NCBI GenBank assembly: GCA_977030845.1
Contig: OZ365116.1
Span: forward strand, 18,848,001 to 18,912,000
Direction: 5' to 3'
Source: Fimbriosthenelais zetlandica
Lineage: Eukaryota
DNA length: 64,000 bases
Shown here: positions 22,173-24,964 of the stretch, one piece after another
Position numbering within the stretch: the stretch's first letter is position 1
Layout: the number at the start of each line of letters is the position of its first letter
Made by a program: the position numbers and the translations under genes
The notes under the pieces: model-generated
What the model was told of the DNA's origin: nothing
What the model saw: only the letters and a program-made list of their open reading frames with translations
Database searches by the model: none

Positions 22173-24964
22173 ATGTTTTGTGAAGGAGCCTATCCTATAA
22201 AAGTGTTTGTAGCATCTTTGTACTTGCTACACAACATAAAATGCATCCAGGCCAAGATAGATTCAGCACGTATGGCTCCAAACAGTGGAGAACTAAAGAA
22301 ACTTCAGGATTTCACGGGACAATTCAATGTATTTCCCGAAGAGGGAAAGCAACAAAGAACAAGGAGGGAGACTTATAAAAACCCATATGCTGGGGTCGAC
22401 CTCCAGGAAGAGGCCATTAAAATAAGAACTAAATTCATTGAAGATTTGCGGCATGGCCCAATGAACTTGGTCATCTTGGTTGAGCGTTCAAGGCCTGTTG
22501 GGAGGTTCTTCTTTAACGGGTATGTGAAGAATATGCTTAACTACACTTTAAGGTACAATACAGACGTCAGACCTCAGGCTGTCAGGGTAGCTATAGCATC
22601 CTTTGCCAAAGGCATCAAGGTGCACGTCAATGGATTGAGTGAGGACCTCAGTAAATGCCAGTTATGGCATGATAAGGCTTACTTGGAGACCCTACTATTC
22701 GACGGCTCTGAGGGAGACTGGGAACATGGAGATTTTGGCGAGGCTTACCAAACAGCGCTTGAAATATTTTCCAAAGCAGAGAACAGAACAGGAAGCAGGT
22801 ATTTATGGGTGATATCTTCAGGAGAGGTGCTTGTTCAGAATGGCGATCCTGATGGAGCTAAGGAACAGTTGTTAAATCTCCAAGTGACAATAGTTGGAGT
22901 TATAACTGGTATTTCACAGCAAGCCCACATAGCTAGTTTCCGAAACATTCTATCATCCACCGACCATCTCCTGGGAAATGTGACTCAGTTTGCTGTAGCT
23001 CTTCCAAGATCAACCCCACTAGAATGTAAGTAGCTAGCCTATCAACCAAAACGGATCTACCCTCATTCAATTTAACATGCTTCTGTTAAAATGTTTAATT
23101 GAAAAAAAATTAGGCTCAACAAGGCATCATTTTCAGTTCCTTATATTCTTGCCTAATCCATTGCAGATACACCATCAGACTTATCTGACGAATGCGGAGC
23201 ATCATATGACCAAGACTGCTACTATGACACTGTTTTTGGCTATAAAGTTTGTGGTAAGTTTTTTATGCATAAAATATGTAGACTTGATACTATGCCAAAT
23301 AATTTATCCATCAATCGTTTCATCCCACTTTCTATACCTCAGGTATTCCCACATGCATGTCTACATGTAAGCTTGGTGATCGATGTGTTAAGAGGACACT
23401 TACAGGCATGAAGATGTGTGGAGAGCTATACCTGCATACTACTTGTAAATATGAGAACCTACAATACAGGGTTTGTACCTGTCATTGGTTGAGTAGTGAT
23501 CGCGGACCAGACTGTCTCTACAAGGAGGAGGACTGTGTGGACTATGCCTGCGCCAATGGTGGTACATGTACTGTGGCTGGAGACAACAGTTACAACTGTA
23601 CTTGTCCCAGAAACTTCACAGGACAATACTGTGAATATCCGGGTAGGTCGTTCAATAACCAATGTCATATGTCCCTGCTTTTAAAAAGCTTTCTTGCTAA
23701 TTAGGAGTTGGAAGTTAATTAAGCCGCCTATTGTCGGAAACTCATAAATGATAGATTCTCAGATTTGCAATGTCCTTTTTTTCAATATAGGCTTGAATCC
23801 AGAAGAGGAAAAAAAGAAACTGGATGAAAAAGTAATAGCTGCCGCAGCTGGTGGAGGGGCAGCTTTACTGGTTGTTGTTGGTGTGGGTTGTTGTATATGT
23901 TGGCGGAAAAGAAGAAGAAGAAGAACCGTAGAAACCGCTGAGATCGGTACAGATCCTGCCCCGACGACCTGTAACATGTCAACCTCCACCGAGTACGTCA
24001 CATATTCACATTACGTTTACAAAACTACATGCTTTGTGACTTATGAACTTTTGTAATTTATCAATCAAGCTGAATTCTGTTTTGCAGACCAATACCAGAG
24101 GAAAGTCTGGCCTGGCGGTTTTACAACACAATGCGTGGACTACCAATGGCTATCATCAAACCCAAAAAGACGGCACCACCAGTTCCACCTAAACCACCAC
24201 CCAAACCCAAACCGCTCAGACCAGTCGGGCTAGATCATATAGTAGGATCTGTAACTTCTATAGGTTTGTGTTAGTTACATGTATTATCATTTACCTCATG
24301 TATTGTGCAAATTAATGTCATGAATTAACCTTAGCAAATGTTGAAACTAATAGTTTTTCTTTTACTTATTCCTACAGCAACAAACAACTCGGACGATGAT
24401 GATGAAAGCATCAACACATATTTGAACACGGTAAAATAGAATTAACCGATCCTATTATTTCTAGAAACATTTCTTGAAAATGAATAGAAGAAAATGTCTC
24501 TTTCGTATTGATATATAATATTAATTAATATTCTAATATTCTTTTCTCAAATATAGCCTTTATGCGATGGAATGGAGGAATGGGAGAGCTACATATTAGA
24601 GCTGACCGTCCCTGCCGAATCAACGCTATACGAGGTGTGCATAGTAGAAGTGAAAAAACGAAAGTATGTAAGTTCTAGTATGAGAATACTACCTACAGGA
24701 CCTGAACTAGCAAGCTACCTGTCTACCCTGAGGTCGCGAGTGGTGGGCGGTATTGTGAATGTCAAGCGGTCAGAATTCAGTGTGACAGAAAACAACGGGA
24801 AAATGATGAAAACCTTTGAGAGAGGAGGTTACCATGGAATCATGTGTATCGCCAAAAGTGCAAGATATGTCGTGATCGGCTACACCAGGAAAAGGTCACG
24901 AGAAAAGCAATGTGCAGTAGAGGTAGACTTCCTCAGGAATCACTTAGTGAATGAGGGTCTATGA
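22173..24964 (+). CDS. Type I membrane protein: signal peptide, RTRR site, SVEP1-type VWA, Cys-rich/EGF, TM, Pro-rich tail, profilin-like domain (about 692 aa, 7 coding exons)
   Basis: Exons 22173-23025, 23167-23253, 23343-23642, 23791-23992, 24088-24263, 24378-24430 and 24557-24964; all GT-AG and in phase, 2079 nt. VWA strands MNLVILVERS, VRVAIASF and YLWVISSG; canonical EGF CVDYACANGGTCTVAGDNSYNCTCPRNFTGQYC; TM VIAAAAGGGAALLVVVGVGCCICW followed by the stop-transfer RKRRRRR. The last junction is inferred; without it the protein ends at TAG 24439. Confidence 0.83.
24557..24964 (+). CDS. Profilin-like domain exon (130 aa from ATG 24572)
   Basis: WESYILEL at the N-terminus, CIV, GGIVNVKRSEF, NNGKMM, GIMCIAKSARYVVIG and VDFLRNHLVNEGL* at the C-terminus line up by eye with the profilin pattern (W..Y...L ... 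CII ... GI...G.KY.F ... I.IG ... V...A.YL...G[YM]); the length also fits. Confidence 0.82.
   Translation, partial: PLCDGMEEWESYILELTVPAESTLYEVCIVEVKKRKYVSSSMRILPTGPELASYLSTLRSRVVGGIVNVKRSEFSVTENNGKMMKTFERGGYHGIMCIAKSARYVVIGYTRKRSREKQCAVEVDFLRNHLVNEGL

Follow-up and report, generated by a model that had tools for sequence, protein, structure and literature searches.

A VWA-EGF membrane receptor with a profilin-fold tail, predicted from a seven-exon gene of Fimbriosthenelais zetlandica

Results

Gene structure and the junction between exons 6 and 7

A stretch of 64,000 nucleotides (nt) from Fimbriosthenelais zetlandica (assembly GCA_977030845.1, contig OZ365116.1, positions 18,848,001 to 18,912,000 of the forward strand; hereafter the window) contained a seven-exon gene at window positions 22173-24964 (+) that would encode a membrane receptor ending in a profilin-like domain. 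The exons summed to 2079 nt, giving 692 codons and a stop. The fusion of receptor and profilin is very likely real, because the junction that creates it was conserved in three genomes and because a transmembrane (TM) helix, tail and profilin domain were found within one exon elsewhere.

All exon borders were GT..AG, the spliced frame was open throughout, and the intron phases were 1,1,1,2,1,0. Exon 1 (22173-23025, + like all that follow) contained the start codon, an apparent signal peptide (22173-22253; residues 1-27) and a divergent VWA domain (22464-22967). Exon 2 (23167-23253) encoded a short extracellular stretch with Cys, running from phase 1 to phase 1, with an intron at the same alignment column in the orthologous locus L001. 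Exon 3 (23343-23642) was Cys-rich, with an EGF-like domain at its end (23531-23629). Exon 4 (23791-23992) encoded the juxtamembrane part, the TM helix (23832-23903) and a polybasic stop-transfer sequence, RKRRRRR (23904-23924). The cytoplasmic tail began with exon 5 (24088-24263), which contained the Pro-rich tract APPVPPKPPPKPKPLRP at 24173-24223, and continued in exon 6 (24378-24430), an acidic mini-exon of 53 nt with a Y-x-N motif (TYLNT) at its end.

The last residues of exon 6, INTYLNT, ended at the donor ACG|GTAAAA (24430). Intron 6 (24431-24556; GT..AG) was 126 nt long and closed with the acceptor TTTTCTCAAATATAG at 24556. Exon 7 (24557-24964) opened CCT TTA TGC GAT GGA ATG and was comprised of five linker codons (PLCDG), the 130-residue profilin-like domain (24572-24961) and the stop codon. 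An earlier note, made from the letters of the window, had proposed this gene with its donor, its AT-rich 126-nt intron and its acceptor, joined phase 0 to phase 0 into a 130-residue profilin-like open reading frame (ORF) within a frame of 692 residues. Each of these positions was confirmed in the sequence.

Intron 6 resembled the other five introns in being AT-rich and in its many stops. Its GC content was 20.6%, compared with 27-35% in the other introns and 40-48% in the exons; it contained three to five stops per frame in all three frames and neither AATAAA nor ATTAAA. Left unspliced, the exon 6 frame would meet a TAG at 24437-24439, two codons into the intron. The PLCDG codons were preceded by a TAG at 24554-24556, with no in-frame ATG upstream, so these residues could be translated solely by splicing.

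The position of the first of these TAG codons, so soon after the putative donor, would also suit two adjacent genes: a receptor stopping at 24437-24439 and a free profilin-like protein of 130 residues made from ATG 24572 on its own transcript. Within the window, however, no AATAAA or ATTAAA occurred between the intron 6 donor and 25039. The first such signal downstream of exon 6 was the AATAAA at 25039-25044 (+), 75 nt past the profilin stop codon, and an unspliced upstream mRNA could therefore not end before the profilin ORF. Two genes would thus leave the upstream mRNA without an obvious end and the downstream mRNA with just 126 nt, too little for a promoter and a 5′ untranslated region.

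Domains and topology of the 692-residue protein

Pfam, fold and database searches were run on single exons. VWA (PF00092) was found in exon 1 at 25.5 bits (cutoff 23.8), with matches also on orthologous and paralogous ORFs among precomputed assignments. EGF (PF00008) was found in exon 3 at 26.1 bits (cutoff 21.5), across profile positions 1-32 of 32. The EGF domain had the six-cysteine pattern and was kept in loci L001, L008 and L006 and in the paralogs. The lone strong hydropathy peak covered residues 428-451 (Kyte-Doolittle 2.2), with RKRRRRR immediately after it, which places the profilin domain in the cytosol. The earlier reading of a VWA-EGF transmembrane protein thus held, and the sequence predicts a type I membrane protein whose VWA and EGF domains face outward and whose tail of ~240 residues is cytosolic. 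From the membrane inward, this tail contained a Pro-rich tract, an acidic run with the Y-x-N motif and the profilin-like domain; the disordered part ahead of the profilin domain was ~105 residues long.

The VWA domain lacked an intact metal ion-dependent adhesion site (MIDAS; DxSxS ... T ... D). DxSxS was replaced by ERSRP, ERTRA or ERSAY and the MIDAS TDG by SSG or TSG; the window itself had ERSRP and SSG. A profile built from the VWA exon of three orthologs gave no significant match to a solved VWA among PDB sequences. The AlphaFold model of the domain was poor (predicted local distance difference test, pLDDT, 56.6; predicted template modeling score, pTM, 0.63), and its top 50 listed PDB matches were almost all VWA-fold domains, including integrin beta8, complement factor B, ANTXR2, TEM8 and VWF A1. 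The model thus backs a VWA fold, which is alpha/beta and Rossmann-like, coarsely and at low resolution. The degenerate MIDAS suggests that the ectodomain would not bind ligands in an integrin-like, metal-dependent way.

The profilin-like domain

Profilin (PF00235) matched across all of exon 7 at 27.8 bits (cutoff 25; profile positions 2-126 of 127). Exon 7 was folded with an alignment of nine relatives, and the resulting AlphaFold2 model had a pLDDT of 92.1 and a pTM of 0.87. The first ten residues, among them the five that precede the Met, were modeled at a pLDDT of 90. In a Foldseek comparison with the PDB, the best 50 matches were all profilins, with template modeling (TM) scores of 0.76-0.79 for the best. 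The C-terminal domain was thus profilin-like, as the earlier note had called it, and it shares its fold, in which the N- and C-terminal helices pack against one side of an antiparallel sheet, with the canonical profilins (PF00235; plant Hev b 8 and Amb a 8, human PFN1/2). Identity to solved profilins was 10-19%, and the family profile aligned plant profilins end to end among PDB sequences (E 5e-5).

The residues that line the aromatic groove, namely W3, Y6, W31/33, H133 or Y125, and L, are known from profilin structures. Groove positions W3, Y6, W33 and Y125/L126 of plant profilin aligned to W, Y, Y/W and H/L, so that the domain shares with canonical profilins the N-terminal W-x-x-Y, the second aromatic and the C-terminal H-L. 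At column 33 the window had Y and several relatives had W, and the groove positions were conserved across the family. Judged from these alignments, the aromatic poly-L-proline groove of profilins is kept. The family also had traits of its own, an invariant N-D-G turn and a C..E motif. Canonical profilins are free cytosolic proteins of 125-140 residues, whereas this domain was the terminal exon, and the C-terminus, of a 692-residue membrane protein.

Relatives and conservation of the junction

An exhaustive phmmer search with exon 7 over 1.84 billion representative proteins returned eight relatives only, all ORF calls of 85-170 residues, and four more came from a profile search. With the 130-residue ORF alone, a word-indexed protein search gave no match, and searches of the ESM Atlas by features and by shape again returned profilin and no multi-domain relatives. 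The closest database relatives were ORFs of 129-140 residues that start at the domain Met, as two separate genes would have it; these came from ORF calling that is blind to introns.

The same architecture was sought in related genomes, as the earlier note had proposed, and was found in two orthologous loci, L001 and L008. The domain was 28-37% identical to that of the window in these loci, which had the same junction and phase. In L001 and L002 (ERR14368249 and ERR14368245) this identity was 35-37%. The exons of L001 encoded, in order, a signal peptide and VWA, a small Cys stretch, EGF, TM helix, Pro-rich tail and an acidic mini-exon of 32 nt ending DYENA|GTAAGT, and its profilin exon had its acceptor 15 nt ahead of the Met, the same distance as in the window. 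Its spliced product was open and 704 residues long, with 34% identity to the window protein over 641 aligned residues. Its six introns fell at the same or nearly the same alignment columns, in identical phases (1,1,1,2,1,0). The second intron of this locus (L001:4007-4178) had a GC donor (ATGCG|GCAAGT), where the window, in the same phase and position, had GT.

Locus L008 (ERZ25767047) contained VWA, EGF, TM, tail and profilin exons separated by longer introns. Its tail exon ended SYENA|GTGAGT in phase 0, with an acceptor 12 nt ahead of the Met. The intron that precedes the TM exon contained a long (ATGT)n microsatellite (L008:8450-8580). In the organism behind ERZ25767047, paralogous VWA-EGF genes numbered at least five, and L011 carried two in tandem; among these copies, only the one on L008 had a profilin exon within reach. 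No profilin exon was found within 10 kb of the paralogs on L009-L011 by tblastn and a six-frame hidden Markov model search. The receptor family is therefore wider than its profilin-fused subset.

In the window, L001 and L008 the donor came exactly three codons after the Y-x-N motif, and the acceptor 12-15 nt before the domain Met. Reading through the donor gave 2, 9 and 33 codons, respectively, with nothing in common. Since these continuations were unalike in both length and sequence, they behave as intron sequence, and a receptor gene that ended there would have kept its donor position and phase in three genomes but not its own C-terminus. The residues before the Met were likewise conserved (PLCDGM in the window, PLCERM in L003) and were among those modeled with high confidence, which also tells against a free protein that starts at the Met. 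On a contig from a fourth genome, that of P0002, a VWA ORF lay 7 kb upstream on the same strand.

The decisive case was L006/L007 (ERZ26052287). Here an uninterrupted ORF of 257 codons (P0012; L006/L007:10001-10774) encoded a TM helix, RRRRR, a PPPP tract, a linker and a profilin-like domain. The frame was free of stops back to 9944, with an AG acceptor at ~9968, and an EGF exon and a Thr/Pro stalk exon lay just upstream. On this sequence, membrane anchor and profilin domain are fused without any splice. L005, a close relative of L006, resembled it from the domain back to a point exactly 21 nt ahead of the Met, and further upstream the two were unrelated. At the point of divergence (L005:150-195 vs L006:10340-10385), L005 had a pyrimidine-rich AG and L006 was coding. 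The comparison indicates an intron present in L005 and absent in L006, inside a continuous coding region. With the TM helix, tail and domain in one exon of L006/L007 and the gene structure conserved in three genomes, the receptor-profilin fusion that the earlier note had put forward was supported, and two separate genes in the window became very improbable.

An operon-like pair was also considered, in which a downstream profilin cistron would receive a spliced leader by trans-splicing at AG 24556, in place of a cis acceptor. An acceptor 12-21 nt before the ATG and a gap of ~100 nt to the upstream coding sequence in the window would fit such a pair, and the arrangement resembles the operons of nematodes or tunicates, as a resemblance only. 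This reading was rejected as exceedingly improbable on three grounds: the upstream unit had no polyadenylation signal before the acceptor, the strong and phase-matched cis donor was conserved in three genomes, and a homolog had contiguous coding sequence.

A Pro-rich tract lay between anchor and domain in every carrier: PPVPPKPPPKPKP in the window and, in the same place, PPPPPP in L001, APPLPVSLPP and AAPKRP in L008, PPPP in L006 and NPPNPPKP...HPP in L003.

Locus L003 (L004 is identical) carried a different partner. At L003:1180-2730 an ORF of 297 residues of Ser/Thr kinase type (HRDIKPEN) ended at a single TGA (2071-2073). Past this TGA the same frame was open and encoded a Pro-rich linker and a profilin-like domain with a PLC-x-x-M lead-in like that of the window. 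Kinase and profilin domain may be fused here, with the TGA spliced out (in-frame intron candidates of 24 or 66 nt) or read through, or they may belong to two adjacent genes.

Clusters of the AlphaFold database contained several unreviewed longer proteins with a C-terminal profilin fold, such as A0A3S1BHV8 (482 residues, fold at 364-482) and A0A5J9VHH5 (758 residues, fold at 630-758). These may be further profilin fusions or merged gene models.

Discussion

Proposed function of the tethered domain

Profilin is described in textbooks as a small, free cytosolic protein, and receptors reach actin through chains of adaptors. A seven-exon type I membrane protein with a profilin-fold tail, together with a mechanism in which that tail binds proline-rich ligands at the membrane, is probably the best explanation of the evidence as a whole. 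The domain would most likely be a membrane-tethered binder of proline-rich ligands, since the aromatic groove was kept and one basic actin-side residue was not. Candidate ligands would be actin regulators of the formin, Ena/VASP or WASP type, recruited to the receptor. The ligand could alternatively be the Pro-rich tract of the receptor itself, acting as an autoinhibitory latch in cis or in receptor clustering in trans. The adjacent acidic Y-x-N motif may serve as a phospho-switch; with a phosphorylated Tyr, Y-x-N is the consensus of the Grb2 SH2 domain.

Several points weigh against this explanation or parts of it. In the column of the Arg of plant GAVIRGK, which we take to lie in the basic actin-contact strand of the bovine profilin-actin structure, the window had K, whereas seven of ten relatives had E or Q; E, Q, T and V all occurred among the relatives. 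A charge reversal at the equivalent human position serves as an actin-dead mutant, and the coupling to actin may be indirect or absent. The direct link between ligand binding and actin dynamics put forward in the earlier note may be too simple. Direct binding of G-actin accordingly reads as the less likely activity from these residues, and as a possible one especially in the window, where the position is Lys. Pro-rich tracts are frequent in disordered tails. The database relatives were all bare ORF calls of 85-257 residues, none annotated at full length, and the support for the junction came from genome comparison, as no public sequencing run was listed for 22173-24964 (RNA) or for 23791-24964 (any kind). 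Some paralogous VWA-EGF genes had no profilin exon within 10 kb. Finally, the conserved Trp was preceded by a Met in every family member, three residues ahead of it and at the expected start of a free-standing profilin. This Met was kept even where it is internal to one exon (L006), and it could be a relic or serve in packing; it may also leave room for a separately translated domain, an extra isoform or intron retention.

These last points bear on whether the gene makes both products. The fusion would then be the chief one, and in addition a shortened receptor, with NTVK as its last residues, would arise by intron retention, or some free profilin-like protein from an internal start, with the profilin module added or withheld by regulated splicing. 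The in-frame stop two codons into intron 6, an intron length divisible by three and the invariant Met would all be in keeping with this, and the paralogs that appear to lack the profilin exon imply that a receptor without profilin is viable. The position of the read-through stop, however, was not conserved among the orthologs, and an internal AUG ~1.7 kb into the mRNA would be out of reach of scanning ribosomes. We regard a gene with both products as unlikely, more plausible than two separate genes and less so than the fusion by itself.

A doubtful extension, which we hold only slightly more probable than that, concerns the family rather than the gene. The domain may belong to an unrecognized profilin-fold subfamily that some invertebrates have reused as a C-terminal signaling module on several carriers, without canonical actin binding. 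By binding the Pro-rich tract in the tail of its carrier, it would act as a switch, either within the molecule or in clustering, and phosphorylation of the adjacent Tyr motif would release it. The carriers would be VWA-EGF receptors, receptors with an EGF stalk and possibly the Ser/Thr kinase of L003.

Comparison with known systems

By analogy, the systems nearest in function would be the ANTXR/TEM8 receptors, integrin beta subunits and plant class I formins. ANTXR1/TEM8 and ANTXR2/CMG2 are type I proteins with an N-terminal extracellular VWA domain, like the window protein, and the long cytoplasmic tail of ANTXR couples to the actin cytoskeleton. Their VWA domains ranked 7, 9 and 31 among the structural matches of the window VWA model; in the VWA profile search of PDB sequences, no sequence relationship to ANTXR was detectable. 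The ANTXR proteins differ in having an intact MIDAS, an Ig-like domain instead of EGF and tails without a profilin fold.

Integrin beta subunits share with the window protein a VWA-like domain, Cys-rich EGF modules, one TM helix and an actin-linked tail, and integrin beta8 ranked 2, 4 and 13 among the structural matches. Integrins function as heterodimers, have a ligand site that depends on metal and use the adaptors talin and kindlin to reach actin, whereas the window protein had a degenerate metal site and a cytoskeletal-type module built into its tail.

Plant class I formins are single-pass, membrane-anchored proteins with an FH1 poly-proline tract and an FH2 nucleator (PMC2386819). In both the formins and the window protein, a module that regulates actin sits immediately beneath the membrane together with a poly-proline tract. 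The formins recruit free profilin-actin, whereas the window protein carries the profilin-fold partner and has no FH2. Poxvirus A42R and Asgard profilins (Foldseek ranks 36, 39 and 45) also have the profilin fold at very low identity. In these the fold persists while the ligand sets change, and they are free-standing, with no receptor fusion.

The arrangement seen here appears to be a new domain architecture for a known fold, present by sequence in at least five animal-like genomes or metagenome-derived contigs. The earlier note had suspected that a receptor with its own profilin domain might be undescribed, and no description of such a transmembrane protein was found in the full-text literature searched; the protein collections searched held no annotation of the family. 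If the reading is true, a single polypeptide would link an extracellular adhesion-type domain to the proline-rich actin machinery, and the gene would be a natural test of which of the profilin activities outlast tethering. An unannotated family would be new material for actin and adhesion biology, and with a domain of 130 residues and a high-confidence model the hypotheses are directly testable.

Other features of the window

Rfam (65.4 bits) and ARAGORN identified a tRNA-Ser gene (anticodon AGA) at 19380-19461 (-), 2.7 kb ahead of the receptor gene. Further upstream were a GNAT acetyltransferase-like ORF at 17938-18501 (-) and a large exon with a UBA domain of the SIK3 type at 14781-16367 (+). 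Downstream, a single-exon TENT5/FAM46 nucleotidyltransferase gene was found at 41736-43031 (+; PF07984, 538 bits).

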